Source: Adineta vaga (Eukaryota; Animalia; Rotifera). From it: 64,000 bases of DNA. Under the pieces are notes generated by a model. It ran no database searches and was not told the origin of the DNA. It saw nothing but the letters and a program-made list of their open reading frames with translations. Positions 616 through 25,554 of the stretch are shown here, one piece after another; position 1 is the stretch's first letter; each line of letters starts with the position of its first letter. The position numbers and the translations under genes are program-made. The stretch spans positions 15,748,001-15,812,000 of the forward strand of contig CP075492.1 in the NCBI GenBank assembly GCA_021613535.1, written 5' to 3'.

Positions 616-894
616 CAATGTATAATCAAATTGCCATGCTTTATTATACAGTAACCAATACTTCATGTATTGAATACACCGTAACTTTTTTCTCATTATA
701 TGTATTCTTCATGACATGTGTAAGTTAAGTACCATCGTAGCAGGGTACTGATAATTGTTTTTCTCAACAGAGACCAACTTTATTCATTACTCTGTTCTCC
801 TATATATATATATAGCCAGACGTTTCCTCATACTTTCATCAGTTGCTTCTCATCGTCTTCTAGTTTCACTTCACATTCCACTACCAATCTCAAT

Positions 895-1137
895 ATGCCT
901 TGTTGTTCATCATCATGTCGTGTCAGCTGTGCCAGCTCATGCTGTGATCCATGCTGTGGCTCTGGTTGTGGTTCATGTTGCGGTTCCGGTTGTGGATCAT
1001 GCTGTGTCGACTCTTGCTGTAGTCCTTGTGTTAAGAAATGTGTCGTCACTAAGACTGTTTGCTACCGACCAGTGGTCAAAGTTGTGAAGAAGACATGCGT
1101 TGTTCGCAAATGCTGTGTCGATCCTTGCTGCTGCTAA
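895..1137 (+). CDS. Cys-rich small protein, copy 1 (80 aa, 25 Cys)
   Basis: Intact ORF, TATA-like element near 800, AATAAA near 1193; differences from the other copies are mostly synonymous. Confidence 0.93.
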   Translation: MPCCSSSCRVSCASSCCDPCCGSGCGSCCGSGCGSCCVDSCCSPCVKKCVVTKTVCYRPVVKVVKKTCVVRKCCVDPCCC

Positions 1138-2507
1138 GATGAACATTCTTTTTTTCTCATATTTCTGTAAACTGACTCACAATAGAATATAAAATAAAAC
1201 CCGGGCAAAAAATATCATTTTCTAGAATATATATGAAGTGAATCATTTATGCAAAGTGTGAAGTACGGACGAGAATAAATTCTGTCCACCCACGCCATCA
1301 AAAAACACGATAACTAATAGAAATACTTCTAAAGAGTGGGTATAATCATTAGAAATCACCATGTCATTTGAGTATATGTTTACTAGCAAACTGGTTCAAT
1401 GTGATAAGCTTATTCGTACGTGAGCATCAATTGATCAAGATTCTCAACATCCAGAAATCTAATTTTGCTAGCTGATTTCTATTCAATGATTAAGAAGATC
1501 GCAGCCCTCGAAAATAGAAGCGCCCTGTTTTGTTTGTCTTCATTCGAGTGATAGAAAAAGTAAATTGTGTGTATGTGTGTGCTGTTTAAAAGACATAATC
1601 TATTCTTTATTCAATTGATCATATGACTAAAACAAAAAAAGAATGATAATTCTACCAAAATTAGTTTTATCACGATGAATTTCTCGCATTTTGCATCTGA
1701 CAAGTGGGTGCTTTGAGTTGCACGAATTATTTGGAATTATAGAAAAAATAGCATTAACTGTTCCCGAATTAATAAGTGAGATTTTAGAGTACAAATTTTC
1801 ATCATAACTACTAATATACCTCACATATCCGGATATTTCATAAAATGAGATAACAACGAATAAATTACCACAATCAATTGATAATGGATATCTTTTCTTG
1901 AAGCAGAATACTGCAAAACTGACGATATTTAAAAGCAATCAAACAAATAAAACATTTATGTGTATTCACCTCTTCACAACTCTCCATTACTGATATGTCT
2001 ATTCACTATTATTGTGGTTATTGTTTTCCATCAGAAAATTACAAATTTTTCCGATACATTTTTTCTGGTATGCTATGGTAATGATCTAATTTGATAATGT
2101 TACATTAGTGTACTATAAAACGTAATAAACAATATTTTCTACAACAAAAAAGTGTATCAGGTGACTTTTACCCTTTTAGAGTTGTCATATTGAAGTTAAC
2201 GTGTATTCAAACTTTGATGTTTTTCACGCTGTCATACAAATCAAAGAAGAGGCAACGATAATAAGCGTGATTTAAAATTAATGTATCATAGTAGTTGATA
2301 TCTAATGCGTTGAATAAAGCGTAACCTTTTTCTCAACATACGTTTCTTCATGACACACCAATAAAGAATTACTTTTGCCAACTGAAAACACATCTCTTCG
2401 CTGCTCTGTTCTTCTTGTATAAATAGGTGGCCGTGTTCTCATAATTTCATCAATCATATCTCTCATCATCCTCTAGTTTCACTTCACATTTCATTACTAC
2501 TATCAAT

Positions 2508-2750
2508 ATGCCTTGTTGTTCATCATCATGTCGTGTTGGCTGTGGCAGCTCATGCTGTGATCCATGTTGTGGCTCTGGTTGTGGTTCATGTTGCGGTTCT
2601 GGTTGTGGATCATGCTGCGTCGATTCTTGCTGTAGCCCTTGTGTTAAGAAATGTGTCGTCACTAAGACTGTCTGCTATCGACCAGTCGTCAGAGTTGTGA
2701 AGAAAACATGCGTTGTTCGCAAATGTTGCGTCGATCCTTGCTGCTGCTAA
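2508..2750 (+). CDS. Cys-rich small protein, copy 2 (80 aa)
   Basis: Intact ORF, TATAAAT upstream, conserved 3'UTR. Confidence 0.93.
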   Translation: MPCCSSSCRVGCGSSCCDPCCGSGCGSCCGSGCGSCCVDSCCSPCVKKCVVTKTVCYRPVVRVVKKTCVVRKCCVDPCCC

Positions 2751-3878
2751 TATGAACAATTTTTTTCTCATTTTTCTGTAAACTAACACACAGTAGAATA
2801 TAAAATAAATCCGGGGAAAATACATTCACGTTGTTTTGTGAAAGGAATAGCATGTCTCTCTCACATTCATCCATACGAGCAAAATTATGAAATATAGCGA
2901 GATGATTTTGTGCAATTCAATTGCATATAACTGGTAATAGCTGAGAAAAACAGCTCTTCATATTCTTGTTTGAAGAATGTTGTGATTTGAAAATACAGCG
3001 TTAGCAACGTGACACAAAAATGGTATTAACTTCTAATTAGAACAGTTTTCTTCAGAATTTGATGCGGGTTGAAACACTATTTTAAAAAACTAAATAACAC
3101 ATGGTTTATGCTACTCGCGAACATAGAAAATGTCAATCTAAAGTTTTCCATCATTTGATTCACGTTTTTTATAAGCTGAAGCTATTCGAAGTAGTAGTAG
3201 TGTAACCAACTTTGAATAGACCGCATTATTTAAGTTACTCTACTATTGTTGCTCATAGATATAACAAACTGCATCCTAGGCTGCCCTCAATTCAGAGATG
3301 AGATTACGACGAGAGTGAAAAGTTTCCGTATTTTCCGTACACATTGTTAATTCTAACTAGTTTCAAATGATTTTTTTCACTTCTGCTTGAGTGAATTTCC
3401 ATCTCGACACGCTAGCACGTTGCAGCTAACTTGAGGTGTAGATTAACGAGTGAAGAAGAAATAGTAACGTACTCCCGTTTATTCAATGCTTTACTTGCAT
3501 CGGGTGACGTTTACCCTTTCAAAATTGTTACGTTGAAGCCAATGCGTAATGAAATCTCGATGTTTTGTCACACTATTGTACAAATCAAAGAAAACGCATT
3601 GCTCATAAGTGCCAGTGAAAATTTATGTGTCATAAAACGGTCAATGTTTGTTGTGTAGGGTAGAGCGTAACATTTTCTCATCATGTGTTTCACCATGACA
3701 TGTGCGTATTAGGCACCTTCATGATACGGCAATAATAAATCATTTTTGTCAATGAAAAACACACCTCTTCGCTGCTCTATTCTTCTTGTATAAATAGGTG
3801 GCCGTGTTCTCATAATTTCATCAATCATATCTCTTATCATCCTCTAGTTTTATTCTACATTATATTACTACTTTCAAT

Positions 3879-4097
3879 ATGCCTTGTTGTTCATCATCTT
3901 GCCGTGTTGGCTGTGGCAGCTCATGCTGTGATCCATGCTGTGGCTCTGGATGTGGTTCATGTTGCGTCGATTCTTGCTGTAGTCCTTGTGTTAAGAAAAC
4001 TGTCGTCACTAAGACAGTCTGCTACCGACCAGTCGTCAGAGTTGTGAAGAAAACATGCGTTGTTCGCAAATGCTGCGTCGATCCTTGCTGCTGCTAA
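3879..4097 (+). CDS. Cys-rich small protein, copy 3 (72 aa, one GSGCGSCC unit)
   Basis: Intact ORF with an in-frame 24-nt shorter repeat region. Confidence 0.93.
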   Translation: MPCCSSSCRVGCGSSCCDPCCGSGCGSCCVDSCCSPCVKKTVVTKTVCYRPVVRVVKKTCVVRKCCVDPCCC

Positions 4098-5589
4098 TAT
4101 GGACAAGTTTTTTTCTCATTTTTCTGTAAACTGACTTTGAGTAGAATATGCAATAAACCCGGGAAAAATATATCAAGATTGATCCTACGGAGAAATAGAC
4201 ATATCATTTTTGTGGGACAAACGTTTTATGATGCTACACAATATCATTCTCTAAAATATATGAATCATAGGATTGATATAATGATTGTTTATTCCTGTAG
4301 GTGAAAATATGGAAGTTGACTGAACTTGATTCTCTTGTAAAGGCGCTCAATCAAGATTTCAAATAAAAGGACCAGTTATAAGTTGGGTGACAGGTAGAAA
4401 GGTGGAATATTTGTCTTTGGATGATTTTTGAATTCGGAAAAAGCAAATGGTTGAGATGTTCATAATATGGAAAAGTTATAATTAAAAGAATATTAAAAGA
4501 TACTCAAACTATGCAAAAGAATACTTTTTTATGTGAACTATTTTTGTGCAATGAAACAATGAATGAAATCTGAACACAATAGTTTATCTTCGTCATCACA
4601 AGGCAGTTATTCAAATCATTTGAAAGAGTACGTTTCTCACTCCAGTGAAATAGTTTAATATTGAAGTTGTTTACATTTAAATAACTTTAATAACTGATAT
4701 CATTGTTGTTACAGATATTCTTATCTTTATATATATTCAGTTTGATTTTGGTCGGCAAACTAGTGGGATAATTCTCCAATCTAACTATCGCATGTTATAT
4801 CTTCTATAAAACACTGGCCATTCCATTGATGAAGGAGGTGATGATCTGAGTATTTATTGCTTAACTACAGATGTACACACCCTCTTCCTCCGTATCTTTA
4901 TATAATCTATGAAAATAGAGATAATGAAAGATCAATTCTAAGATGGGATTCAATTAAATGAGGATGCGCATCACTTTTGAACTAGATTGTTTGGTAACTA
5001 ATGATATAGAGAAATAATCAAAGGGATCAACGTATTACCATTTTCATCTCTTCGTCTACCTCCAGAATTGAAATATTCATACAATGCTATTCTTATATCC
5101 GTATATTTCATATTATTGGCACTGACTTTCTGTGCTGCTTTATGGCATTCACATTCCTGCGATAACGTTCCAACGTAGTACTTTTGACCGTGAGAAGCAA
5201 TATTTTCCATGAAAAAGTGTATGATATGACTTTTACCCTCTAAGCATTCCTGTAGTGAAGTTAATGTGTAATCAAATTTCGATGTTTTCTCACACAAATC
5301 AAAGGTACAGCATCGATAATAAGCATGAGTGAATAGCAATGTGTCATAGTACGCGATGTTTGATGTATTGAGTAAAGCGTAACTTCTTTCTCTCCATACA
5401 TTTTTACATGACATGTGAATGTTAAGTACCATTATCGTAGGGTACTAATAATTATTTTTGTCAATCGAAAACAACCTTCTTCACTGCTCTATCGTTGTAT
5501 ATAAAGAGACAGACATCTTCTCATACTTTCATCAATCACTTCTCATCATCCTCTAGTTTTATTCTACATTCCATTACTACTCTATCAAT

Positions 5590-5832
5590 ATGCCTTGTTG
5601 TTCATCATCATGTCGTGTTAGCTGTGCCAGTTCATGTTGTGATCCATGTTGTGATCCTTGTTGCGGTCCATGTTGTGGCTCTGGTTGTGGATCATGCTGC
5701 GTCGATTCTTGCTGTAGTCCTTGTGTTAAGAAAACTGTCGTCACTAAGACTGTCTGCTATCGACCCGTCGTCAGAGTTGTGAAGAAAACATGTGTTGTTC
5801 GCAAATGTTGCGTCGATCCTTGCTGCTGCTAA
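5590..5832 (+). CDS. Cys-rich small protein, copy 4 (80 aa, [14 protein letters not shown] variant)
   Basis: Intact ORF, TATATAAA upstream. Confidence 0.93.
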
Positions 5833-5947
5833 TATGGACAAGTTTTTTTCTCATTTTTTCTATAAACTGACTTAGAGTAGAATATGCAATAAACCCGGGT
5901 AAAAAATACAAGAGATAATACTTATGTTGCATTTGAATTTATAAATT

Positions 5948-6433
5948 TTAGCTCTGATTCGAGGCTGAATGAGAGTACTGTAAGACAGCACTTAGCTGAG
6001 GCTGATTCGAGTCATTAACAAGCTTAATTACTGATGTATAGTCGTGTTCACCAGTTGTATAATTATCAATAACGTGTCTGCCATAAGGCTGAGTAAGCCA
6101 ATAGGCCTCATCTAGTCGAAGTCCTTTATAGCCAAGTGACTGGAGCCAAGCACTCACTCGTTCATATGAACATTCAGGTTTCAACCAGAAGACCTCATTG
6201 CGTGTTTCTTTGTTCAGAATGATTTGCTTAAATGCTTCCGGAAAGTCAAGATATCTTGTGGGTTGTAAGCGTGATTCAGCCTTATCTTCATCGTTGTTCG
6301 GAAAAATCCAGCTACGTTTGCTGCCAAAAAAGAATAACGCATTGTCTAAAACTTCTTCAGGAATAGATTCGTATTGGCGCACGAGAGCCGAAGCAGAGAT
6401 GAAAACGACACGATGAATCTCACAATTAGTCAT
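5948..6433 (-). CDS. Orphan 161-aa protein of unknown function, convergent with array copy 4
   Basis: Uninterrupted ORF, higher GC than its flanks, globular-like composition, TATAAAA on the minus strand near 6522-6528. Confidence 0.65.
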   Translation of the reverse strand: MTNCEIHRVVFISASALVRQYESIPEEVLDNALFFFGSKRSWIFPNNDEDKAESRLQPTRYLDFPEAFKQIILNKETRNEVFWLKPECSYERVSAWLQSLGYKGLRLDEAYWLTQPYGRHVIDNYTTGEHDYTSVIKLVNDSNQPQLSAVLQYSHSASNQS

Positions 6434-7182
6434 TGTAGAGTTCTAAATCAATAAAACATAAATATAATGATAGTATTGGAATTAGTAATGTCTGTTTTTG
6501 TGCTAAAATCAGTCAGAACACTTTTATATCGACCTAATATGCATTAATCATTATATAACTTATATATATCTACAAGAATGTTTGTTTATTCCCTATAAAT
6601 TCAGTCGCTGTAATTGCTAGCATCATTTAACGTTCCATATTGGATTGGAAATTGAACTATAGCTCTTAAAAAACGAGTCGATTTATAGATGCATATGGTC
6701 AAAACTGTTAACCTCTGGTGTACATCTTCTATAGTTTCCCAACACGCGAATTTTTCAATATACAGATTTTTTATGAGTATTCACCGAAATATAGAAATCA
6801 CAAAGTTAAAAATGAAAAGCTAATCAATCGAAGTTCAATATATTTGAATCTTTTTTTATCGATTCTTTCTTTTACGAGAAGAATTAACTCACCATTTTCT
6901 TGACTTTTCTACAGGTCACCTCTAGATGTGCAAATGAAAAATGAAGAAAATATGAGTAGAGTAGCTCTTTTCTTCTTTCTTTCTTTCTTTTGTTCTTGTT
7001 CGTGCTAAGCAAATAAGCAAACGCATGTTTCATTTCACAACACTTTACTTCACCAATACAGCGGAACTCATGATTATTACGAATGGAGAGTTCCATCACC
7101 TTTTTTTCTTTCGTCAGTCAGACAAAACTTATTTAACGTTGTTTTTATATCTTAAAAAGCGAACATGGTATAGGTGCAACCA

Positions 7183-7690
7183 ATTATATAACGAAGGATG
7201 CCTATCTGTCTGTTCGCTATGCATTCAATTCCTGTTTTGACCAAGATCACCATACTTTTCATGATACTTCCTTGGGCCTAGATAAGGTTGAAAATATTAA
7301 CGGGAGGATCAAAGGGCGGTACCTGGGTGAAATTTCATCCAAATTCTCAATTCACGGTATTAACCTAGATCCGAACTAAGCTCGGGAGGAGGTTAAAATT
7401 ACCAAGAGCGATTAAGGAGGAATTGTTTATTGGGGAAGTTTTACACACACTCGTGACTAACTAGAATTTATCCCCTGCAAAAGCTAGCGTCATCAAACTT
7501 CTCTGAATATTTGCTTTGACCTAAAGAAGGATAGAGAGAGAGAGGGTAACCAAAACCAGTAGGAGGAGGGAAAAAAGAAAGTGAAGAAAGGATCACTAAA
7601 AACAGCGAAGATGAAGAATGAACTGAGTAGAGTTTCATGTATGTTTAAATAAACTGAAATTTCTCCCAATTTTTCGAAGGTATAGCCAGT
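7183..7690 (+). mobile_element. Degenerate non-autonomous Helitron remnant
   Basis: 7200-7340 (tctgtctgttcgctatgcattca...gatcacca...cttcctt...gtgaaatttcatcca) matches the reverse complement of the 5' part of the element at 42085-43014. The ends are approximate. Confidence 0.7.
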
Positions 7691-7699
7691 TTGCTATGA

Positions 7700-8440
7700 T
7701 CTTGAAACTATTTATCTTCTATTGTGTAAGCATCCGTTACAGCATATCGTCGAATACTTTCAACATTTTATTCTCTTATTGAATCAAAATTTAAAAATAT
7801 ATAGTTGATGATCAATCTTGTACTCCTATAATTACTTTTAGTTATGGATATGATTTCGCTAATTAATCATCACTTACTCTTACATTTTTGTGTGTCATTT
7901 AATTCCTTCATGCAATTCCTTTTTATTTATATTTTGATATTTCATCAATTACGCATACATGCATGAGCATAAGTCCTGCACTATAACTACTAATATTTCA
8001 ACAGTTTTTTTTCTCATTTTTTGTGAGATTCCAGCATCAATGAGGATTATATTCGGACTTTTAACTTATCGAAATATTCGTCGAACAACAAGTGGATCGA
8101 CAATTAATAAAAATGACATTTTCACAAATGATTCTTGTTGTAATGTGTTCTACTTCATTAGCTAGTTATCATATATACAATGTAATTACATCTGGAATTG
8201 TCAAAGATCAGGATCGACTACTGAAAGAATATCTTGTATACGCAATTCTTAGTACTGATTCAACATTATATTTTGGTGTATGTTAATGTTTCTTCTACCA
8301 TAATTTCTATGAATCTTTCTTTGATTATTTTTAGCCAAGTTTCTATATTTCTTAATTTTGTTCAAGTCGTTTTCGTCTAAACGTCAAGGAATGATTACTA
8401 AAACGACGACACACAAATGGGATTGTTCCATTCAATTAAA
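7700..8440 (+). pseudogene. Decayed rhodopsin-like GPCR
   Basis: Frameshifted fragments (IIFGLLTYRNIRR, DRQLIKMTFSQ, TM7 plus a short intron) resembling the intact GPCR at 28747-29801. Confidence 0.65.
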
Positions 8441-8957
8441 CAGGATGATTTTAATGAGAACGTAGATGTGAGTTAAGAAGGGACACCAACAGCCAGTTTC
8501 AGTACGTATTCAGTCTTTTGAAGAGTATAGACTGAAGCGGTCGTATTCACATATACCCATCCATTCAATGTTGTTCTATTGTGTCAGACGGGTTTTAACT
8601 CCGCAGAGTTGTAGTGTTGAATTTAATGTGTACGAAGAACCTTTTATATTTTGTCACACTATCAAGCAAATAAAGAAAAACTCGTTCTGAATATGCATGA
8701 GTTTAATTTGATGTCTCATAGTGGTTGATATTTGATGCATCGAACAAAGCGTAACTTTTCTTATCATATGTTTTCTTATGACCTGTGTATGTTAGGTGCC
8801 TTATGATACGGCAATAACAAATCATTTTTGTCAATGAAAAATAAATATTTTCATGTGTCTCTTGTTGTATATAAAGAGACAGACATCTTCTCATACTTTC
8901 ATCAATCACTTCTCATCATCCTCTAGTTTTATTCTACATTCCATTACTACTCTCAAT

Positions 8958-9200
8958 ATGCCTTGTTGTTCATCATCATGTCGTGTTAGCTGTGCCAGTT
9001 CATGTTGTGATCCATGTTGTGATCCTTGTTGCGGTCCATGTTGTGGCTCTGGTTGTGGATCATGCTGCGTCGATTCTTGCTGTAGTCCTTGTGTTAAGAA
9101 AACTGTCGTCACTAAGACTGTCTGCTATCGACCAGTCGTCAGAGTTGTGAAGAAAACATGTGTTGTTCGCAAATGTTGCGTCGATCCTTGCTGTTGCTAA
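8958..9200 (+). CDS. Cys-rich small protein, copy 5 (80 aa; same protein as copy 4)
   Basis: ATG at 8958 by homology; the ORF-track upstream extension runs through the TATA region. Confidence 0.93.
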   Translation: MPCCSSSCRVSCASSCCDPCCDPCCGPCCGSGCGSCCVDSCCSPCVKKTVVTKTVCYRPVVRVVKKTCVVRKCCVDPCCC

Positions 9201-10527: not shown

Positions 10528-10769
10528 ATGCCTTGTTGTTCATCATCATGCCGTGTTAGCTGTGGCAGCTCATGCTGTGATCCATGTTGTGTCCTTGTTG
10601 CGGTCCATGTTGTGGCTCTGGTTGTGGATCATGCTGTGTCGATTCTTGCTGCAGCCCTTGTGTTAAGAAAACTGTCGTCACTAAGACAGTCTGCTACCGG
10701 CCCGTTGTCAAGGTTGTGAAGAAGACATGCGTCGTTCGCAAATGTTGTGTCGATCCTTGCTGCTGCTAA
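10528..10769 (+). pseudogene. Cys-rich small protein, copy 6, with a 1-nt deletion frameshift near 10592 (pseudogene or assembly error)
   Basis: TGTGTCCTTG here versus TGTGATCCTTG in copies 4 and 5; 242 nt instead of 243. Confidence 0.8.
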
Positions 10770-12382: not shown

Positions 12383-12625
12383 ATGCCTTGTTGTTCATCA
12401 TCATGCCGTGTTAGCTGTGCCAGCTCATGCTGTGATCCATGCTGTGGCTCTGGTTGCGGCTCATGCTGTGGTTCCGGTTGTGGATCATGCTGCGTTGATT
12501 CTTGCTGTAGTCCTTGTGTTAAGAAATGTGTCGTTACTAAGACTGTCTGCTACCGACCAGTGGTCAGAGTTGTGAAGAAAACATGCGTTGTTCGCAAATG
12601 TTGCGTCGACCCCTGCTGCTGCTAA
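12383..12625 (+). CDS. Cys-rich small protein, copy 7 (80 aa)
   Basis: Intact ORF with conserved flanks. Confidence 0.93.
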   Translation: MPCCSSSCRVSCASSCCDPCCGSGCGSCCGSGCGSCCVDSCCSPCVKKCVVTKTVCYRPVVRVVKKTCVVRKCCVDPCCC

Positions 12626-13628: not shown

Positions 13629-13871
13629 ATGCCTTGTTGTTCATCATCATGCCGTGTTAGCTGTGCTAGTTCATGCTGTGATCCATGTTGTGGCTCTGGT
13701 TGTGGTTCATGCTGTGGTTCCGGTTGTGGATCATGCTGCGTCGATTCTTGCTGTAGTCCTTGTGTTAAGAAAACTGTCGTTACTAAGACAGTGTGCTATC
13801 GACCCGTCGTCAAAGTTGTGAAGAAAACATGTGTCGTTCGTAAATGTTGCGTTGACCCTTGCTGCTGCTAA
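13629..13871 (+). CDS. Cys-rich small protein, copy 8 (80 aa)
   Basis: ATG at 13629 by homology; intact. Confidence 0.93.
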   Translation: MPCCSSSCRVSCASSCCDPCCGSGCGSCCGSGCGSCCVDSCCSPCVKKTVVTKTVCYRPVVKVVKKTCVVRKCCVDPCCC

Positions 13872-14649
13872 GATGGATATTCTTTTTTTCTCATTTTTCT
13901 ATAAACTGACTCAGAGTAGAATATAAAATAAACCCGGGGAAATAATATCGATGTTTTTTGGAGAGAAAAGTAAATGTATGAATTTCGTATGGACATACAA
14001 AAAGAAAAGAATATTTCTATTCTTATATGATCTTATGAATGTCTTTGGAAGTCTCAAGATTTCAGAATGATGGTATTAGCTGATCGTTTTGTAGCGAAGG
14101 TCTTATTTTCCGTTCAAGATGAAAGACTTTCATTTTATTTATCGCAAATGCTTGTTTTGCACTCCGAATCTAATCTCAACAAAGTACCTAACCATATAGC
14201 ATCCTCTTAGAGGAAAATTTTAATTTGCTTTTATGAAAAAAGAGATCAAGAACGGGATGAAAAACATAGCATGAGAAAATAGATTGAAATAAAATGAGTA
14301 AATCAATTCTAACTTACTTAATGATAAACAATTGTGATATTTTATTATCGGATAGGATACGTCTCATTATTAACCCATAGGTTTTTTATCAATTCTCATT
14401 TCTCTTCATCATATTCTTATTTTCAGAACTAAAAAACAGAGTTTCTTTCGTTGCAATTCGAATGTTCAATTTCTTCATATTCATTTGGATTCGCAGCTGT
14501 GAAGCATCAGGTAAATACTTTAGCTTATCAGAACTCTTAACCTTGAGATATGATCAATCAATTTAAATCATTTTCTTAATTTATCTAAGAATTTTAGTAT
14601 CATCGCAAAAAGTTTTCGAATGGTCAATCAAATAGAAAAAGAAAATAAT

Positions 14650-15545
14650 AAGAATATAAATGTTAAAAAGTTCAATTTTGAATTCTCATAATTCTTGTCA
14701 TTCGTTTTTCGTGTCTTGTTCGTGCACTTATATTTGCTCGATTAAATGTGTTAGATAGTTTTGTAAATATAGCATATAAAGCTAGTCCTTGTTTTGGCAT
14801 CATAACAGCAAATAAAAGAGCGATCATAAGTGCAATCGGTTGAAGACAAGCAAGTTCCTATCGTTTGTTTTTTAGTTAGAATTTCAAATGAAATAATTGA
14901 AAACTTACAAAATCTTTAGGATACATTACAGCAACTGTTGATTCAGTTGTTGCCGATGATACTGTTGCACCAGCTCGTGTTGTTAACTATTAAAATAATA
15001 ATAATAAATTAATCACGAAAAGGAAAAAGAATATTTTACTAATGTGTTAATACTAGTTGTTGATGTTGGTTTTGTTGTTACTGTTACTGTTGTAACTGGT
15101 GTTGTCGTCGTCGTTGTTGTTGATGAAACTGCTGGATTCCAAATGTTAAATACCCAAAAAGTTGGATCATTGATTGGTGCAGATTCAGGACTTTGAAATA
15201 GTTGTTTTTTAGTATAACTATTCCATTCTCAACTAATGTTATTAAAACACTATCACTTACCACACAATTCCGTTCCACTGGCAACACCTAAAATGAGGAT
15301 GATGATGTTGAAAATGACGATATTCAAACATACCACTATCCATGGTGCAACTGGAAAACGAATGATCATTCAGATAAGGATGAGAGATCTTTTCGGTTGT
15401 CAGTTTTACTAATCTCGATTTGATCGTTCAACAATAATTTCTGGTGAAAGAGTGCAACCACCAGGATTTGGATAGCCATAGAAAAGAAATTGCAGCGGAA
15501 CAGAAGTCATTGGAGTATTTGTTGTAACTGCTGCAGCCTTATAAA
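14650..15545 (-). pseudogene. Decayed single-pass membrane protein gene with a Thr-rich stalk
   Basis: Fragments SVPLQFLFYGYPNPGGCTLSPEII, PAVSSTTTTTTTPVTTVT and a hydrophobic segment IALMIALLFAVMM, separated by short introns, stops and frameshifts. Confidence 0.45.
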
Positions 15546-15704
15546 AATCTTGAGGGTGTGAATGAGTTTTCTTTATTAAAGCCTTCACTCACATTCATTC
15601 TCATCCAACACACAGATCGTCACCATCAACAAAAATACAACATTCAGAAGCGAGAGATTAGATAAATAGATTTGTTAGTTAATATTCGTTCATGTAATAG
15701 AAGA

Positions 15705-18700
15705 TCAAACTATGCGACGTCGAAATGCTTTCCATTTTCGTCGAATCATTGTGTTGAATTCTTTCTTGTATATTTCCGATGTTAATACAAAAATGAAAAA
15801 ATGAAGTACAGGTAGAATAAATGAAACAAAGTAACTAACCAAGAATAACTTATATTCTTTTGCTGATTTCATACAATTAGATAAAAAGGAAATAATTAGA
15901 CGTGGTAATGTTAAGGTAACCAAAAGAATCGAACTAAAAATCAGATTTTTATGACGAAATAATTGTCGTTTTAATTGTAGTTCAAAGTTAACTTGTCTTC
16001 TGGCTGTTGAACGTTGTTTTGCATTTAAAATAATAATACCAATTGTTAAAATAACATTTAGTGAAAAAGGAACAATAAAATGAAAAATATTGATAAATCT
16101 ATTATAGATTTCCAATTTAGATGTAAATTTAACTAAACACCATGTTCTTTGTTCTTCGATATCATCGACAAGATGACGATGAATTGGATCATGAAGAATA
16201 GATGTAGTGATCACAAGAGGAATAATGAATATAAGTGGTTTAGCATATTGTCGACTTTTTCTTTTATCAAAATGAACACCGAGAAACACAACGAGAAATC
16301 GTTCAATCGTCACAAACACATGATACCAATCAGTTGTAGCTAATAGAAATCGAAGAAGAAACTCAACTGGTACACAATTAAACCAAAGAATAGATCGTTG
16401 AGTGATCATTTGCATTTGTGAAAGAATCAAAATCCAGACTTTTGTGTAAAGAAAAATCATGATTAAAATCGATGTTATTGATGATGTAAATAGATAAAGA
16501 CCACAACCTATTTCTCGAGTGGATTTTACTTGAAATGTCAGGTTTGATAGAATGCCACTTATAAAACCAATAGTAACTAATAATGTAGCTAAAATTATAC
16601 TAATTTTAACAGGTAAAGATTGTTGATTAACACTTAAATGAGGATAAATATGATAACCCAAGATTGAATCAAGTGAAAGACCAAAATGTTTCGTTGTCAA
16701 TTGACATTTATCACCATAAAAACATTCTTGACAAACACATATTATTCTTGTTGGACAGTGCGGATGATCTTGAAAACAATGTGCATCATTTTCACAATTA
16801 TTGTAACCTAAACACTTGTAAGTTGTATTGTAATTAAAATGAAAACAATTGGCATATCTTTGTTCTGCACATAGACACATAAATGTATAATTGTCATGAA
16901 AACAGAGAAGATCAGAATATTTTTGACATAAAGTATGATAATATTTTACACGATGTAGAAATTGGTAATTAAAAATGATGTCATCCATCAGTTCTCGAAT
17001 ATGTAGACAACGTCGTAATGAAGAGATTTGTGTAGAAATAACAATTGAAGGTGTATAATTATGTTGAAGAGCAACAAGATAATACATTTGATCAAATTGA
17101 ACAAAAACAAGATGAAAAGGTAACGATATATTAATACTTAAAATCTTTTCATTTAATCGAATTTTTCTGAACATAGTTACTTGAATTGGTTCTGTTCTTA
17201 TACTGGATGCAACATTAATAAAGTGAACTAATGCAGATTGTGGAATTTCGACATTTGAAAATGAGATATCTATTTTCACATCTGTCTTTTCACAATATTT
17301 ACCAAAGAATCCATTTGAACAAATACATATAAATTTAGTTAATGAATATCGTGAATCGAATGGTACACAAATTCCTTTATTCATACATGTATTATTCATT
17401 TGACAGATTGACTTCAGATAACATCGTGGTCCTATTTTATTCAAAGGACAAAGACAGATTGATCGATTTTCTTTCATACCAACACAGATCGAGTCTGGTG
17501 AACAACTACATTTGTATTCAACCGTCAAAATCAATTTCGCACGATTTGAACATTGACAAGACTGGGTATGATCATTCATCAATAATTCTAAATATGTGTT
17601 ACTACATAATACAAGACAATCTTGTTCGGCTGGTATTATCAGTTGGAAACTCATACGATTGACAGGCATAAAAAGTAATTTCACGGGATATATCCAGCTT
17701 GTTAGATAAACTAGATTGACTTTGTCATATGCATCGATATAAATTGTATAATTCTTTGTCATATCTTTCGGTCGATTTTGATAGAGAAGGCGTATATTAT
17801 ATTTGGCATTACAATTAATTATAGGAATATATGTAATTTGTTCATAAGAATGAACAAAACCAGTATGATCAACGAGTCGAATAACAATACCGATTGCATT
17901 AAATTTTTCAAAAGTTGCTTGACGTAATCGAATGGTAAGACTAACAAGTTGATTTTGATATTGACAAAGATGACCATAATAATTCTCTGGACAAAGGCAT
18001 TGTTCGATTTCATGTTCACCAACAAGAATTACAAATCCTTTATTACATAACCATAATCTTGAATCATTAGTATGTCGAACAATAGACACTTTCTCAGTCT
18101 TTAATATGTCGTTGTATATCTGTCTATGATCTCTTGTTGACAATTGAGTTAGAGGAAAATTTTGTGATGATTTATGGGAGAATGGTGTGTTTCCATATAT
18201 ACTATTGTCTTCCATAGAATTAAGATAACGAAACATAGCTAAGTTCGTTTTATTAAATACACCACATGGTAGAGTTGTATCAATAAAATCATGACATTCT
18301 CGACAAGCACACATAGATCGGACACATTTTGTATCATTCCAACAACGATAACGATTTTGAGCATTCTCTGAATGTGGCGATATACAATGAGATCGCTCAT
18401 CTGTTGATCCACGACAATCAATTACTCCATCTTCAATATAATCTATATGTAAACAACCCATCGTATGATTTTTCGGTGATACACAAGGATGATGATTGGT
18501 AGGACATTTCCAAAATATTGAACAATTAAGTTCATCAATTCCTTTTGGACATTGCCATACTTCATTACAGTATGTATTTGAATTGATACATGGCCATAAT
18601 TCACAATGAGTTTCATCGGTTTCATTGTTAACAGGTAACATATTGACGCGTTTATTACAGATCGAGGAAAACGAAAGTTCTGAAATCTTTGTTATAATAT

Positions 18701-20327
18701 CATTTCGATTGAATTCATCTTCTCCGCCAATACATTGTTTTTGTCCATCGTTTACAAGAATAGATAACAAACATTTCCGTTCCGATGTACATGAAAAACG
18801 ATGATGCTTATTATTCAGTTCACACGATTCAACAAAACGCGACTCATCAAATCCATCATAACAATCTGATATTCCATCCATAATTCGACGTTGAGGTATA
18901 CATTTATTTGTTCCAGGACAACGCAACATTGTCGAATCATCACAAGTAGTCTCATTATCAGTTTGAAACAAATAATCACATGACTTAAATATTCGATACA
19001 TGTCTCCGATTGATGAAGAAATCGACTGATTTACATATAAACATGTATGATTGTCAAGTGTAAACATTGGACTCAGATGTGGACAAAGGTTTTTATCATA
19101 ACATATAAAATGCGGATCAGTTCCAAATACTCTAACAGATGTTTGGTTCGAAAAATAACCATATTTTACGTGACCATACCAGACTGAGAAATCAGGTGCA
19201 ATAAATGCCGATGGACATCGTTGACGAGTTTGCATTTTACATTCTTCTATATTATCGCACAAGTTCTTACAATATTGATCAAAATTCTTTAAGAACCACG
19301 AGTCTGACGCACACATCAAAGTTTTAAAACAGCGAAGATAATGTGTATCTGAGAAATTGTACCAATCACTTAGATAGTTATACATTCGATTTCGATTATT
19401 TGAGCATTTATAATGGTTTTGTGCCAGAAGCAAATTAAGACAGGTTCCATCTCCACAACTAAAGCCATTATCAAGTGAACATAGATTATCGTCACATTTA
19501 AATGATGAATCTCTTGTACATAATCTTACCAGATTAAGTTTCACTTCGTCTGATCCGTCCAAACATTCTGGACTATTGATATCAATAAGTTCGTCCAAAA
19601 GAAATTCTTCATCAATACACATGCCATTCCGACATTGATATTCATTTTCTTTACATGTATTCATTTCCAGTTCCAAGCAATATTTTTCATCTTCACCACC
19701 ATTAAGACAATCCACTTTACCATCGCATATTTCACGCCAATCAAGACAAATGAGAGATGGATGAACATCACATTTCATATGCATATAACAAGTAACTGTC
19801 GTATTTTTCTCAAATAAACTAATCCGGTCCTTTCTGAATTGTATAAAATATGAAAATGATTGATTTGAAATGAACCGATATTGACAAAACGGTCCAAACC
19901 ATGGCAAAGTACAATTGTAAAATACATCAGTTGATGAAGATTTGCTCACTTGCAGAAATTCTTCATAACGTTCAGCAACATCAATAGGACTCGACCATTC
20001 CATAAGATTCCAAGGGGTTATATTTCTCGCTTTTAATTCATCAAAAGTTAATCTAGATGATATTACTTTTTCATTGACATGTATTACTTTTTCCTTAATC
20101 GATCGAATACAATATTCAACACTTTGCTCAATTTTATATGATTTTTCCCCGTTCTCGACATTCTTCGTTATGGATGAATAGAAACAATCATGATCGAAAT
20201 CATTTGTCATCAAATCTGTATTATACAGATTGTAGAAAGGTTGTTCTGTGTTTAAATTAGAAACAATCCAGATATTACTGTTGATAACAATAGTATGAAA
20301 TAACAAAATATGCATCATGAATGTCAT
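15705..20327 (-). CDS. Intronless 1540-aa receptor: LDLa repeats + EGF-like domains + C-terminal class A 7TM GPCR
   Basis: LDLa motifs (CDGKVDCLNGGEDE, CYDGFDE), EGF motifs (CLCPENYYGHLC, CICSNGFFGKYC) and seven hydrophobic segments with an ERF motif. Confidence 0.92.
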   Translation of the reverse strand: MTFMMHILLFHTIVINSNIWIVSNLNTEQPFYNLYNTDLMTNDFDHDCFYSSITKNVENGEKSYKIEQSVEYCIRSIKEKVIHVNEKVISSRLTFDELKARNITPWNLMEWSSPIDVAERYEEFLQVSKSSSTDVFYNCTLPWFGPFCQYRFISNQSFSYFIQFRKDRISLFEKNTTVTCYMHMKCDVHPSLICLDWREICDGKVDCLNGGEDEKYCLELEMNTCKENEYQCRNGMCIDEEFLLDELIDINSPECLDGSDEVKLNLVRLCTRDSSFKCDDNLCSLDNGFSCGDGTCLNLLLAQNHYKCSNNRNRMYNYLSDWYNFSDTHYLRCFKTLMCASDSWFLKNFDQYCKNLCDNIEECKMQTRQRCPSAFIAPDFSVWYGHVKYGYFSNQTSVRVFGTDPHFICYDKNLCPHLSPMFTLDNHTCLYVNQSISSSIGDMYRIFKSCDYLFQTDNETTCDDSTMLRCPGTNKCIPQRRIMDGISDCYDGFDESRFVESCELNNKHHRFSCTSERKCLLSILVNDGQKQCIGGEDEFNRNDIITKISELSFSSICNKRVNMLPVNNETDETHCELWPCINSNTYCNEVWQCPKGIDELNCSIFWKCPTNHHPCVSPKNHTMGCLHIDYIEDGVIDCRGSTDERSHCISPHSENAQNRYRCWNDTKCVRSMCACRECHDFIDTTLPCGVFNKTNLAMFRYLNSMEDNSIYGNTPFSHKSSQNFPLTQLSTRDHRQIYNDILKTEKVSIVRHTNDSRLWLCNKGFVILVGEHEIEQCLCPENYYGHLCQYQNQLVSLTIRLRQATFEKFNAIGIVIRLVDHTGFVHSYEQITYIPIINCNAKYNIRLLYQNRPKDMTKNYTIYIDAYDKVNLVYLTSWIYPVKLLFMPVNRMSFQLIIPAEQDCLVLCSNTYLELLMNDHTQSCQCSNRAKLILTVEYKCSCSPDSICVGMKENRSICLCPLNKIGPRCYLKSICQMNNTCMNKGICVPFDSRYSLTKFICICSNGFFGKYCEKTDVKIDISFSNVEIPQSALVHFINVASSIRTEPIQVTMFRKIRLNEKILSINISLPFHLVFVQFDQMYYLVALQHNYTPSIVISTQISSLRRCLHIRELMDDIIFNYQFLHRVKYYHTLCQKYSDLLCFHDNYTFMCLCAEQRYANCFHFNYNTTYKCLGYNNCENDAHCFQDHPHCPTRIICVCQECFYGDKCQLTTKHFGLSLDSILGYHIYPHLSVNQQSLPVKISIILATLLVTIGFISGILSNLTFQVKSTREIGCGLYLFTSSITSILIMIFLYTKVWILILSQMQMITQRSILWFNCVPVEFLLRFLLATTDWYHVFVTIERFLVVFLGVHFDKRKSRQYAKPLIFIIPLVITTSILHDPIHRHLVDDIEEQRTWCLVKFTSKLEIYNRFINIFHFIVPFSLNVILTIGIIILNAKQRSTARRQVNFELQLKRQLFRHKNLIFSSILLVTLTLPRLIISFLSNCMKSAKEYKLFLVSYFVSFILPVLHFFIFVLTSEIYKKEFNTMIRRKWKAFRRRIV

Positions 20328-21557
20328 AAATCTGAAAAAGAACAGTGTATTCAGATCACAGAAGGACTGGATGTAACATCAGAATATCTTAAAAACAAAT
20401 TTAGTCAACACAACAGATTTTTACCTGAAAATTGTTCGCTAGATTAGTTAAAACACGAATGAATTAAACGTTTTTTTGCAATAATAACATAGTATGAAAG
20501 AGAAAAATTTAAATAAGCATTTTGTGCATGACTTATCCACATTATAAGCTTCTAAATCTAACAACAAATGTATCACCTGCCATTACATTTCTCGTTTTTT
20601 TTTCACTTAGAAAAGTATATATTTGTTTCATCATATAATATTCACAGTTTAGAGTTGCTGGCAACACAATTAGTCATGTATTCTCTTTTTTTTCATTGTG
20701 GAATATTGATTTAACAACTTGAATGTGGCTGTGAATATCTACAAGCACAAGAGATACAGTAGCATTTAACAAAGAGAAAGAAAAAGGAAAATAGAAAACG
20801 ACGATATAGGCAAAAGCATGATTAACATATGGAAGTACTAATATCAGTTAAACTTTACAACGTAAAGTTTGTGTTTCTACAAATATTTGAACTATTCACA
20901 GATGATATTTTCCTTTCACGAAAAAAACTACAAATTGTGATAAAAACATTAAATGTAAGCTTTCACCATCATGAACTTAATGATGTGATTGAGATTATCG
21001 TTGTTTTTTATTCTTCACAGATGAAATTCAAAAACATTGGAATAAATAAAATCTATCGGGCTATTCACTTCTACGCATCCGCGCATTATCTAAATGTTCA
21101 CTCAATATTGTACCTATGTATTCATATATTACATATGTTTCTCGATCTCTTTTTGTGTCATGTTAGTGTATTCACACAATTTAATGGTGTAACATTATTG
21201 TAATATAGAAGGTTACACTCAATATATTCCATTAGAAAAAATATCAAATGACTTTTACCCGTTTAGAGTTTTTGTGTCGAAGTAAACGTATAATGAAATT
21301 ACCATGCTTCAACACACAGTCCCCGATATTTCATGTATCAAATAAACCGTAACTTTTTTCTCATCATACGTATTTTTCATGACATATGTAAGTTAAGTAC
21401 CATCATAGTAGGGTACTGATAAATTGTTTTTCGTAACGAAAACCAACTTTCTTCATTGCTCTGTTCTCCTATATATAGACAGACGTTTCCTCATATTTTC
21501 ATCAGTCACTTCTCATCCTCCTCCAGTTCCAATTCACATCACACTACCAATCTCAAT

Positions 21558-21824
21558 ATGCCTTGTTGTTCATCATCATGTCGTGTCAGCTGTGCCAGCT
21601 CATGCTGTGATCCATGCTGTGGCTCTGGTTGTGGTTCATGTTGTGGCTCTGGCTGTGGCTCATGTTGCGGTTCCAGTTGTGGTTCATGTTGCGTTGATTC
21701 ATGCTGTAGTCCTTGTGTTAAGAAAACTGTCGTCACTAAGACAGTGTGCTATCGACCCGTTGTCAGGGTTGTGAAGAAAACATGCGTTGTTCGCAAATGT
21801 TGTGTCGATCCTTGCTGCTGCTAA
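21558..21824 (+). CDS. Cys-rich small protein, copy 9 (88 aa, three GS(G/S)CGSCC units)
   Basis: ATG at 21558 by homology; intact, with an in-frame repeat expansion. Confidence 0.93.
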   Translation: MPCCSSSCRVSCASSCCDPCCGSGCGSCCGSGCGSCCGSSCGSCCVDSCCSPCVKKTVVTKTVCYRPVVRVVKKTCVVRKCCVDPCCC

Positions 21825-22786
21825 GATGAACATTCTTTTTTTCTCATTTTTCTGTAAACTAACTCTCAATAGAATATAAAATAAAACCCGGGCAAAAACT
21901 ATTCAACTTGTTTATATATACAAATAGACATAGGTATTCGTTCAATTTGTTAAAATTGATTGTATGAATCTGATTCGTATAGCAATAAGACAAATATTTG
22001 TCAATGATCAAGTGTGGCAAGTAATATTTCAACAAATGAAATTTTCAAACTCTCTCTACCTAATTCAATCGAGAGACTCACATTTAATTGTTATCAATTT
22101 TCTTCGATGTACTTTGAACCTTTTATTTAAGTTTTGTGAACATACGAAATCATTTTTCGTGGGTGTTGAAAAATCATTAGATATGTTTTCTTTATCTCAT
22201 CGTCAAGATCATTCTTCAACCACAATGATGCAAAACTGATGATTTCATTCTCTATCATCTCTACACGTCTTTCCATACTGTCTTTGTGTCCATATATTGA
22301 ATAATTTTCTTAATACATTTCTGTGTTGCGTTACGGTTTTCCAGTAATTTGTTAATGTTACAACGTTGTACTATAGACCGTAAGATTCAATATTTTCCAC
22401 CAGAAAGTGTATCTAATAGATGACCTTTCCTTTTCAGAATTCTTGTGTTAAAGTTATTGTGTAGTCCAATTTCAATGTTTTGTTACACTATCATATTAGT
22501 GAAAGATATGGTATTGTTAATAGACATCAGGCGAAAGTTGTGCGTTATATACACTGATATTTAATTTATCAAATAAAGCGTAACTTTTTCTCATCAAATT
22601 TCTCCGTGACATTTGTATGTTAAGAACTATTATAACAGTGTAATAATTATTTGTTTTTGTCAAGTGAAAACAACCTTCTCCGTTGCTCTTTTCTCCTATA
22701 TATAGAGAGAGACGTATCCTCACAGTTTCATCAGTCATTTCTCATCGTTCTCTACTTTTACTCTACAGTACACTATCACTATCAAT

Positions 22787-23029
22787 ATGCCTTGTTGTTC
22801 ATCATCATGCCGTGTTAGCTGTGCCAGCTCATGCTGTGATCCATGCTGTGGCTCCGGATGTGGTTCATGTTGCGGTTCCGGTTGTGGTTCATGCTGCGTC
22901 GATTCCTGCTGTAGTCCTTGTGTTAAGAAAACTGTCGTCACTAAGACTGTTTGCTACCGACCAGTGGTCAAAGTTGTGAAGAAGACATGCGTCGTTCGCA
23001 AATGTTGTGTCGATCCTTGCTGCTGCTAA
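22787..23029 (+). CDS. Cys-rich small protein, copy 10 (80 aa; same protein as copy 8)
   Basis: Intact ORF. Confidence 0.93.
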   Translation: MPCCSSSCRVSCASSCCDPCCGSGCGSCCGSGCGSCCVDSCCSPCVKKTVVTKTVCYRPVVKVVKKTCVVRKCCVDPCCC

Positions 23030-23966
23030 GATGAACATTCTTTTTTTCTCATTTTTCTGTAAACTGACTTTACATTATATGAAATAAAACCTGGGCAAAA
23101 ACTATCAATATTGTTTTGTATCGACAAGTAGATATAGAAGTTTTATGAAAGGAACATTTGACGCTATGAAAAAACATCATGTCGTCGCATATATGAGCTA
23201 TAAGTATAAGTAATCTGATCAAGACTCTAATCGCCCAGTCTAATTATATGTTGTTTTTCTTGACAGTCTCTGAGATTGCAAACGAAACGGCCGAGTGTTT
23301 ACTTTTGCGGCTAGAGAACAAGTGTAAATTTGAATGAATCAGAGAGGTCCTTATCCTGATAATCAACTTCATTTTAACCTACACACGACAACATCGTTCA
23401 TTCTTCACATATGACACTCGAGTTGATTGGAATAAACAAAACATATCAGGGTATTCACTTCTGCGCGTCTTTGCATTATCCTCACACGTTCACTCAATGT
23501 TGTTCTTATATCTGCATATTGCATACGTTTCTCGAAGCTTTTTTTTGTTGTGTTATGGCATTCATATAATTTAATAACGTTACAATGTTGTACTACAGAC
23601 CGTAATTTGCATCAAATGACTTTTAACCTCTCAGAATTATTATGTTGAAGTTTCTGTAATTAAATTTCGATGTTTTGTCACACGATTGTACAAAATATCA
23701 GTGAAACATTATGTCATAGTAGCCGATATTTGATGTATTGCAGAAACCGAAACAAAACATATTTCTTTCTTCTCATATGTTTTTTTCTCTATAGTATGTG
23801 CATATTGAGTACCGTCATAACAGTGTAATAATTGTTTATTTGTCAACAAAAAATAATTTTCTTTGCTGCTCTGTCCAGTATATATAGAGAGACGTGTTCT
23901 CATACTTTCATCAATTACTTCTCATCCTCCTCCAGTTTTACTCTACAGTACATTATCACTATCAAT

Positions 23967-24221
23967 ATGCCTTGTTGTTCATCATCATGCCGTGTTAGCT
24001 GTGCCAGCTCATGCTGTGATCCATGCTGTGGCTCTGGTTGCGGCTCATGCTGTGGCCCATGCTGTGGTTCCAGTTGTGGTTCATGTTGCGTTGATTCATG
24101 CTGTAGTCCTTGTGTTAAGAAAACTGTCGTCACTAAGACTGTCTGCTATCGACCTGTCGTCAAAGTTGTGAAGAAAACATGCGTTGTTCGCAAATGTTGC
24201 GTCGATCCTTGCTGCTGCTAA
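23967..24221 (+). CDS. Cys-rich small protein, copy 11 (84 aa, extra CCGP unit)
   Basis: ATG at 23967 by homology; intact. Confidence 0.93.
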   Translation: MPCCSSSCRVSCASSCCDPCCGSGCGSCCGPCCGSSCGSCCVDSCCSPCVKKTVVTKTVCYRPVVKVVKKTCVVRKCCVDPCCC

Positions 24222-25311
24222 AACGAACATATTTTTCTCATTTTTCTGTAAACTGATTTACAATAGAATATAAAATAAAACCCGAGCAAGAGATATTCAC
24301 GTTGTTTTGTGAAAGGAATATAGTTTTTGTATGAATATGAGGATGGGAATGCCGTTTTGTTCGAGACTAGCATGTCTATCTCACATACATATATAAGGGT
24401 AAAGCTATGAAATAGTGAGGTGATTTTGTACAATTCAAATGCATATATCTCTAAACAGCTGAAAAAATTAACTATTTATATCTTTGTCTAAAGAAAGCTG
24501 TGATTCGAAAACATAGCGTGAGCGTCGCGACTTAGAGAGGGTATTTACGTTATCATAAAACTAATGGCTGTAAGCATAAACCAATCGTATCCTAGTTAAC
24601 CTTGCATTGGGACAGAAGATTACAGATAGAAAATAACGTTTTTATATTTTCCGTATACTATATTGATCATAAGCAATTTCAAAAATGACGTTCTACATAT
24701 GAGTGAGATAAAGTTTTCTCGATCCGTTAAAAAGCGATGTGACATAACAGTGTCATCATAAAGTAACTTTGATTTGTCATTTTTTAATGCTACGTATACA
24801 TTTAAATTCGTGATCTAGTATATCTTTTGTTTGCATTTGAAGAAGTTCGGCAAAAGTTCTATTTTTCCTGATTTTGCTAACGTACACTGAAGAGGTAATA
24901 CCCACATACATTCCTTGAGTCAATGTTGGTCTTTTGTGTCAGATGACTTCAACCCTGTCAGAATCGTTGTGTTAAACTTAATGTGTAATCAAATTTGGCT
25001 AATTTTCACACTATCATACAAACTAGAGGAAACTCGTAACTAATAGGCATGGGTGGAACGTTATGTCTGAGTGGCTGACATTTAAAATACCGAATAAAGC
25101 GTAATATTTTCGCATCATATATTTCTTCATGACATCTTCATGTTAAGTGCTACCATAACAGGACAATAATGAATTGCTTTTTTAGCAATGGAAAACAATT
25201 ATTTTCGCTGCTCTTTTCTTGTATATATATAGACAGACGTGTTTTTACAATTTCATCAATCATTTCTCATCGTCTTCTAGTTTTATTCTATAGTACATTA
25301 TTACTATCAAT

Positions 25312-25554
25312 ATGCCTTGTTGTTCATCATCATGTCGTGTTAGCTGTGCCAGCTCATGCTGTGATCCATGTTGTGGCTCTGGTTGTGGCTCATGCTGTGG
25401 TTCCGGTTGTGGTTCATGCTGCGTTGATTCATGCTGTAGTCCTTGTGTTAAGAAATGTGTCGTCACTAAGACTGTCTGCTACCGACCCGTCGTCAGAGTT
25501 GTGAAGAAAACATGCGTTGTTCGCAAATGTTGCGTCGATCCTTGCTGCTGCTAA
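25312..25554 (+). CDS. Cys-rich small protein, copy 12 (80 aa; same protein as copy 7)
   Basis: Intact ORF. Confidence 0.93.
   Translation: MPCCSSSCRVSCASSCCDPCCGSGCGSCCGSGCGSCCVDSCCSPCVKKCVVTKTVCYRPVVRVVKKTCVVRKCCVDPCCC

Follow-up and report, generated by a model that had tools for sequence, protein, structure and literature searches.

Which kind of protein is encoded by a run of short, extremely cysteine-rich reading frames in the genome of the rotifer Adineta vaga, and what may it do in the cell? The frames lie within a window of 64,000 nucleotides of contig CP075492.1, the whole stretch of DNA analysed here, where 12 copies of a gene for a small Cys-rich protein are found, all on the plus strand, intronless and leaderless (Table 1). 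The initial annotation had described 12 co-oriented intronless copies with about 30% Cys; this is confirmed, with the correction that 11 of them are intact, coding for 72 to 88 aa with 29-31% Cys, and one, copy 6, carries a 1-nt deletion. Comparison of the copies by tblastn gave E-values between 1e-44 and 1e-62, so far below the best background value (5e-4) that chance resemblance is ruled out. The frame of copy 6 shows no further damage downstream of the deletion, which may reflect either a recent pseudogene or an assembly error; a DNA run showed no inserted base at the site, a result that is not decisive. The array is interrupted by a single ORF of 1540 aa on the minus strand (15705-20327), LDLa/EGF/7TM-like, and also contains a 161-aa ORF. 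In the public annotation, all four copies checked (9, 10, 11 and 12) are uncalled.

Table 1. Features of the array, with positions counted from the first nucleotide of the window
Feature	Position	Strand	Remarks
Upstream part of duplicated unit (copy 1 as example)	483..894	+	about 400-700 nt common to copies
Copy 1	895..1137	+	80 aa, intact
Val/Thr/Lys core coding stretch, copy 1	1021..1116	+	residues 43-74, predicted two beta strands
3' element (copy 1 as example)	1190..1210	+	AATAAA, then CCCGGG
Copy 2	2508..2750	+	80 aa, intact
Copy 3	3879..4097	+	72 aa, intact, shorter by two 4-residue units
Copy 4	5590..5832	+	80 aa, CCDP/CCGP type, near-identical to copy 5 (dS 0.04)
Copy 5	8958..9200	+	80 aa, intact
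Copy 6	10528..10769	+	242 nt, frameshift: one base missing after 10591
Copy 7	12383..12625	+	80 aa, intact
Copy 8	13629..13871	+	80 aa, intact
Copy 9	21558..21824	+	88 aa; flanks most like those of copy 1
Copy 10	22787..23029	+	80 aa
Copy 11	23967..24221	+	84 aa
Copy 12	25312..25554	+	80 aa

The sequences flanking the coding regions are also shared. A TATA box is located 88-94 nt before the ATG in 12/12 copies; the motif CATGAC, at about -180, and an element similar to TGACTTTTACCC, between -310 and -375, are each present in 8/12. AATAAA is found in all copies, 50-56 nt past the stop codon, followed in most by CCCGGG, a sequence which occurs at eight sites in the 64-kb window, all of them at this 3' position. 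No enrichment of HSE, SKN-1, AP-1 or MRE motifs was observed in the promoters of the A. vaga copies, and ARE-like matches, present in five of the 12, are scattered in position. A signal-peptide exon upstream of the ATG was considered and rejected, because a 2-nt indel separates the near-identical copies 4 and 5 in the 5' stretch, and the AG located 31 nt upstream is missing from copy 10 and from A. ricciae; the earlier description of the protein as leaderless is thus borne out.

The encoded protein is composed of two parts, a variable Cys/Gly/Ser/Pro arm and a near-invariant Val/Thr/Lys core. Within the 27 residues of the core, 13 are Val or Thr, 9 Lys or Arg and only 3 Cys, and its net charge is +7. 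Cysteines account for 25 of the 80 residues of the protein, and the single Tyr is the sole aromatic residue. The A. vaga protein contains 9 CC and 8 CxxxC motifs and no CxC, a Cys periodicity similar to that of KAPs. The length of the arm changes by steps of 4 residues (72, 80, 84 and 88 aa), that of the core is constant, and the number and spacing of the cysteines differ among copies and between species; A. ricciae has an extra CCDP unit relative to L001. A single CGP motif is found in each of copies 4, 5, 6 and 11, as well as in A. ricciae; the other copies have none. A Met-Pro start with nearby Cys and a C-terminal CCC are invariant in both Adineta species. Two AlphaFold runs both predicted a beta hairpin in the core (pLDDT about 70-80), leaving the remainder unstructured; mean pLDDT was 46-51, and the positions of the hairpin turn differ by two residues between the models. 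The Val-rich, beta-forming core originally proposed is therefore supported at the level of structure prediction.

Among the 71 gap-free codons which could be compared, 37 are variable, and the amino acid is altered at only 5 of them. Mean dS among copies is 0.30 and mean dN 0.016 (dN/dS about 0.05), in agreement with the purifying selection that had been suspected from invariant proteins and differing codons. Between A. vaga and A. ricciae, a 21-codon core shows 9.1 synonymous and 2.3 non-synonymous codon differences per pair. The nearest copy changes from segment to segment, and incompatibility is seen in 185 of the 351 informative pairs of sites, as produced by mosaic exchange; the clustering of compatible sites (permutation p 0.07) is suggestive at most. 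Such exchange resembles the concerted evolution of KRTAPs (PMC2528016).

At fourfold sites the copies carry 27-33% C and 4% G, against 3-10% C in neighbouring genes, and this asymmetry is better fitted by translational selection than by GC-biased conversion. Two putative RNA runs yielded six short contigs, with a depth of 2.6-20, and none came from a third. One contig runs past the TATA box, on its upstream side, by about 50 nt. Because of the low depth, the contig reaching past the TATA box and the empty third run, carry-over of DNA from a multi-copy gene could account for these contigs. A need for high dosage had been put forward for the array: the preference for C-ending codons suggests, from the sequence, a high output, whereas the putative-RNA signal is low at most, and high dosage is thus something that we infer. 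Tandem amplification, TATA promoters and C-ending codons point to intense synthesis over a short period, probably in embryos or juveniles, the signal of which would be diluted in bulk cultures.

In Adineta ricciae two tandem copies were found, of 99 aa each and with 2 CxC motifs, in which the AATAAA/CCCGGG 3' element is retained; the copy number is thus at least 12 in A. vaga versus 2 at the A. ricciae locus examined. The A. ricciae copies have been entered as SET-domain chimeras (CAF1652130.1, CAF1427949.1 and CAF1648369.1). A true fusion was rejected, as the genomic ORF ends with three Cys and a stop codon, beyond which lie AATAAA and the conserved 3' element; in the chimeric gene model, the splice leaves the ORF within its last codons. 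About 0.5-0.7 kb upstream of the pair lies an intermediate filament-like ORF, whose match to Pfam Filament (E 2.5e-9) falls slightly short of the cut-off; this observation is circumstantial.

Apart from A. ricciae, homologs were located only in one metagenome contig. Protein and HMMER searches and JGI scans revealed none outside Adineta, a weak negative, since databases miss these ORFs; in the JGI metagenome scans, 304 pattern matches were unconfirmed and 31 exact matches to the core pattern all proved, upon translation, to be due to chance. No family was found in Pfam (up to E 10) or NCBIfam for the whole protein, its parts or its homologs, nor any Pfam match for the core alone. Spliced genes entered the searches as single open frames. 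Planctomycete YTV-repeat wall proteins, which we take to resemble the core motif, were rejected, there being no YTV Pfam match for the core and no signal peptide. A first-pass word-index search gave no match, and P0001, an 825-aa repeat protein, was discarded as a compositional false match. A PDB sequence search returned only two matches (E 1.7-3), corresponding to Cys-bias noise; fold searches by Foldseek PDB, VIA-wide and Atlas stayed at E >5, Z <=2.1 and TM <0.5, a single hairpin being uninformative. Among Atlas clusters, those that come closest (0.76-0.80, below 0.9) are similar to SCYGR, KRTAP3 and SPRR, and serve as leads only. Literature search yielded no description of this Cys-rich family and nothing on the chemistry of the lamina. 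The initial statement that no named family was recognised is in line with these results, and the family is apparently unnamed, of a known functional kind and limited to Adineta.

Which functional kind is best judged against known systems. Like KRTAP and SCYGR proteins, to which the nearest Atlas clusters belong (0.78-0.80), those of A. vaga are small, leaderless, about 30% Cys and built of short CC-containing repeats in variable number, and their intronless genes form tandem clusters subject to gene conversion (PMC2528016). KRTAPs are, however, unique to mammals (PMC2528016), and the A. vaga host is a rotifer; no Pfam keratin-matrix or Keratin_B2 match was found, the repeat step is of 4 residues, a conserved basic Val/Thr/Lys beta core, unlike KRTAP repeats, is present, and any partner keratin would be putative. 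The Drosophila Mst(3)CGP proteins (Mst84Da-d and Mst87F), which are needed for an intracellular structure (PMC10645079), are likewise small, with Cys-Gly-Pro repeats and clustered genes, but homology is not detectable, CGP is minor in the A. vaga family, the beta core is additional and the host has no known males. A further comparison regards proteins built of a core plus arms. Sauropsid corneous beta-proteins and silkmoth chorion proteins combine a conserved Val-rich beta core with variable Cys/Gly-rich arms, and are encoded by tandem arrays, which is also the organization described here; no sequence or fold match was found, however, and the A. vaga core is strongly Lys-rich. Silkmoth high-cysteine chorion proteins are secreted and have signal peptides.

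On these grounds, we give somewhat better than even chances to a lineage-specific family of intracellular, disulfide-cross-linked structural or matrix proteins, analogous and not homologous to KRTAP or Mst(3)CGP proteins. Small cytoplasmic proteins would harden some intracellular structure by means of disulfide cross-links: the basic core would form extended beta strands, pairing within or between chains or binding a partner that is acidic, for instance intermediate filaments, and the flexible Cys/Gly/Ser/Pro arm, together with the terminal Cys clusters, would establish intermolecular disulfides, as in keratin-associated proteins. As to the site, the intracytoplasmic lamina of the integument is general to rotifers and has been described as made of disulfide-linked keratin-like protein. 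It is a plausible location, one candidate among others; the placement initially proposed there is not directly supported. Homologs were found only in Adineta although the lamina is rotifer-wide, a weak negative given the gaps in the databases, and the sharp gap in copy number between two Adineta species would be odd for a body-wall component common to both. We regard as doubtful the more ambitious proposal that these proteins arose independently in invertebrates as the counterpart of KRTAPs and are a main component of the disulfide matrix of the rotifer lamina, overlooked because their ORFs are skipped or mis-spliced in annotation.

Alternatively, the protein may buffer metals or thiol redox state in the manner of an atypical metallothionein, being produced on demand when metal or oxidative stress occurs, with the gene amplified for dosage. 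It would then bind Cd, Cu or Zn through the Cys-rich arm and tail, the basic core acting as a spacer. Metallothioneins are comparable in size and Cys fraction, rich in Ser, Gly and Lys, cytoplasmic and often arranged in tandem; the single aromatic residue, the predicted disorder of the Cys regions and the 2 CxC of A. ricciae agree with this, and tandem amplification with a low bulk signal is compatible with an inducible gene. CxC is, however, absent from the A. vaga copies, no Pfam metallothionein match was obtained even at E 10, and the best-conserved part is the Cys-poor Val/Thr/Lys core with its Tyr, the Cys number and spacing being variable; by inference, 4-residue arm steps beside a core of constant length fit a fixed metal cluster less well than a matrix protein. 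An MRE is present in only 1/12 A. vaga promoters (500 nt each), and MRE-like matches within 1 kb of the A. ricciae copies number none for one and two for the other; C. elegans metallothionein promoters reportedly have no MREs (PMC4101491), so that their absence is weak evidence. The metallothionein role, the main alternative, is made less probable by these data and appears unlikely.

Less probable still is an S-acylated scaffold on the cytoplasmic side of the plasma membrane, which might coexist with a structural role. The N-terminal CC and C-terminal CCC would be palmitoylated, and the basic beta core would bind acidic lipids or a cortical partner; the invariant ends and the charge are suited to this, and GAP-43 offers a precedent in its N-terminal di-Cys acylation motif. 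On the other hand, 25 cysteines far exceed the need of an anchor, no CaaX box is present at the C-terminus and no match to CYSTM or any other acylated-protein family was found. Very improbable, in our judgement, is a structural protein of the sperm tail or male germline, analogous to Mst(3)CGP, kept for rare cryptic sex and near-silent in asexual cultures. The CCGP/CCDP repeats, the small leaderless protein and the tandem cluster do recall Mst84D/Mst87F, whose clustered genes with Cys-Gly-Pro repeats are male-specific (PMC10645079), and the signal in bulk runs is low. Yet rarely expressed, redundant copies are unlikely to hold such a low dN/dS together with a strong codon bias, and no sequence match with the fly family was found. 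Moreover, bdelloids are not known to have males.

Whichever role applies, these genes reveal an annotation gap, formed by the four uncalled copies in A. vaga and false SET fusions in A. ricciae, so that family counts taken from these gene sets would miss or misassign members. A chelator would represent an unusual metallothionein architecture. If the family is structural, small Cys-rich matrix proteins encoded by tandem, converting arrays would have arisen independently once more, here within the cells of an invertebrate, and the genes would be candidates for a part in the rotifer lamina or in some other hard structure; should the proposal of a KRTAP counterpart in the lamina prove true, the layer of the body wall by which rotifers and their kin are defined could be approached at the level of genes.

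Translation and tblastn of the window located 12 intronless copies of the Cys-rich gene between 895 and 25554, all in the same orientation; 11 of them are intact, and encode proteins of 72, 80, 84 or 88 aa with 29-31% Cys. The 12-copy array of the initial annotation (co-oriented and intronless, 72-88 aa, about 30% Cys) is thus retained, except that copy 6 is frameshifted by one base missing after 10591, the rest being undamaged. No extra base turned up at this site in a deep DNA-like run from the same organism, which is compatible with a true deletion or with an assembly error. Copies are spaced by 1.2-1.9 kb, apart from two larger gaps, which contain a 161-aa ORF and a 1540-aa LDLa/EGF/7TM-like ORF, respectively. 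Through a phosphatase gene nearby, the window was assigned to record CP075492.1 of Adineta vaga assembly GCA_021613535.1. Annotations were compared over public sequence of this record identical to window 16525-37148, where none of the four copies checked (9-12) is called; none of eight copy sequences is present in a collection of 15 billion proteins.

The duplicated unit extends from about 400-700 nt upstream through about 80 nt downstream of the coding part. In all copies, a TATA box precedes the ATG by 88-94 nt and an AATAAA lies 50-56 nt past the stop; all eight CCCGGG sites of the 64-kb window directly follow the AATAAA of a copy. This 3' element also follows the genes of Adineta ricciae, with which the TATA region and start context are shared as well. 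An upstream exon, coding for a signal peptide, is disfavoured on two grounds: copies 4 and 5 differ by a 2-nt indel in their 5' stretch, and an acceptor AG is absent upstream of copy 10 and in A. ricciae. The protein is hence leaderless, as initially proposed.

Purifying selection, also proposed there, is supported by comparison of the copies: in the 71 codons free of gaps, dS averages 0.30 and dN 0.016, a ratio of about 0.05, and the amino acid varies at only 5 positions. The nearest neighbour of a copy differs between upstream, coding and 3' segments, and over half of the informative site pairs are incompatible with a single tree, which points to sequence exchange by conversion or unequal crossing-over; spatial clustering of compatible sites gave a p-value of 0.07. 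Fourfold sites of the copies contain 27% C and 4% G, while C is 3-10% in six neighbouring ORFs. This bias recurs in the A. ricciae gene and is interpreted as translational selection, to which GC-biased conversion, known from mammalian keratin-associated proteins (KRTAPs) (PMC2528016), may add.

In a HMMER search of 1.84 billion representatives, a single true homolog was found; it lies on a metagenome contig of 789 nt and has a 17-residue core equal to that of copy 1 despite 8 nucleotide differences. The core of this homolog, used as a query, retrieved A. ricciae proteins annotated as SET-domain proteins. The corresponding DNA contains two tandem single-exon ORFs of 99 aa, 2 kb apart, which differ at 6 of 300 nt and both close with three Cys codons before the stop, and the SET-domain fusion was rejected as a gene-model artefact; the first copy at locus L035 is also mis-modelled, as a 206-aa spliced product. 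No homologs in other genera were found in the protein databases searched, which largely lack these ORFs, and the family is apparently limited to Adineta. The loci of the two species share no neighbours, except a similar giant EGF-type ORF.

Features of the A. vaga window and of the A. ricciae loci (L034-L036)
Feature	Location	Strand	Accession
CCCGGG palindrome after AATAAA	window 1200, 4158, 5894, 10828, 12683, 13933, 21887, 25613
CCCGGG palindrome, A. ricciae copies	L035 7487, 9465
Chimeric models joining Cys-rich gene with neighbouring SET-domain gene	L034-L036		CAF1652130.1, CAF1427949.1, CAF1648369.1
161-aa ORF between copies 4 and 5	window 5948-6433	-
Pieces of an apparently multi-exon gene between copy 8 and giant ORF, including a mucin-like, Thr-rich stretch	window ~14675-15590	-
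Giant 1540-aa single open frame inside array: LDL-receptor class A and EGF repeats, C-terminal multi-pass GPCR-like part	window 15705-20327	-
Paralog of giant ORF (27% identity), 5 kb from A. ricciae pair	L035 14650-19473
Gene model with leucine-rich repeats and intermediate-filament(-like) coil segment, just upstream of A. ricciae pair	L035 5023-6594	+
Ordinary downstream genes: dual-specificity phosphatase, rhodopsin-family GPCR, PfkB kinase, U-box protein, metallophosphoesterase	window 26525-47700
Granulin-like Cys-rich exons	window near 41000-41450
Inverted repeat/palindrome, ~300 nt, 81% self-complementary (blastn)	window 45472-45765
Shared 94-nt element in opposite orientations (78% identity), perhaps the relic of a small transposon	window 7199-7291, 42889-42982

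The giant ORF is annotated as 1578 aa. The 161-aa ORF matched neither Pfam nor NCBIfam families and has no identical entry in the databases, and single frames of the mucin-like pieces revealed no clear family. In the acanthocephalan Pomphorhynchus laevis, cysteine is the commonest tRNA gene class, with 57 copies on one contig (PMC7310846), a possible sign, as a lead only, that this relative of the rotifers synthesises large amounts of Cys-rich protein.

Part of the words of copy 1 is present in eight putative RNA runs, mostly in small shares, and next to none in four sister runs. Reads on copies 5-8 from two putative RNA runs produced six short contigs, all on the Cys-rich genes (depth 2.6-20); a third produced none. 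Since one contig extends past the TATA box, by about 50 nt on its upstream side, and trace genomic DNA would assemble multi-copy coding DNA first, the contigs may stem from carried-over DNA; any expression is low at best in the sampled putative RNA runs.

The protein (net charge +7) consists of Cys/Gly/Ser/Pro repeats (residues 1-45), where units of four residues are gained or lost, a core rich in Val/Thr/Lys with three Cys (46-72), and a tail with 5 Cys in 8 residues. AlphaFold predicted two beta strands in the core for both species, at a pLDDT of about 70-80. Outside the core no structure was predicted with confidence, and the models average a pLDDT of 46-51; the turn is shifted by two residues between the two models, so that support is limited to a beta propensity of the core. 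Family and fold searches of the protein and its homologs gave no match, in agreement with the initial failure to recognise a named family. The nearest entries of the Atlas protein-cluster collection were SCYGR-, KRTAP3- and SPRR-like, at scores of 0.76-0.80, a range also reached by shuffled proteins.

The composition fits a metallothionein-like buffer, but CxC motifs are missing in A. vaga, the Cys count is variable, the conserved core is Cys-poor and the A. vaga promoters show no enrichment of metal-response elements; such a role is rather unlikely, and the family does not belong to the metallothioneins. An S-acylated cortical scaffold seems improbable, and a male-germline protein similar to the Mst(3)CGP sperm-tail proteins of Drosophila (PMC10645079) more improbable still. 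We lean slightly towards a disulfide-cross-linked intracellular matrix component. The properties of the genes are observed, those of the product (assembly, oxidation, stage and site) inferred: the beta core would align chains or bind an acidic filament, the Cys arms would lock the network by disulfides, and synthesis would occur in a short developmental burst.

The rotifer intracytoplasmic lamina is disulfide-linked and keratin-like. It is an electron-dense layer inside the syncytial epidermis (PMC13403294); a role of the family in building it is doubtful. The Adineta genes constitute a real, unnamed family under selection, which does not belong to the KRTAPs but probably works in a KRTAP-like mode.
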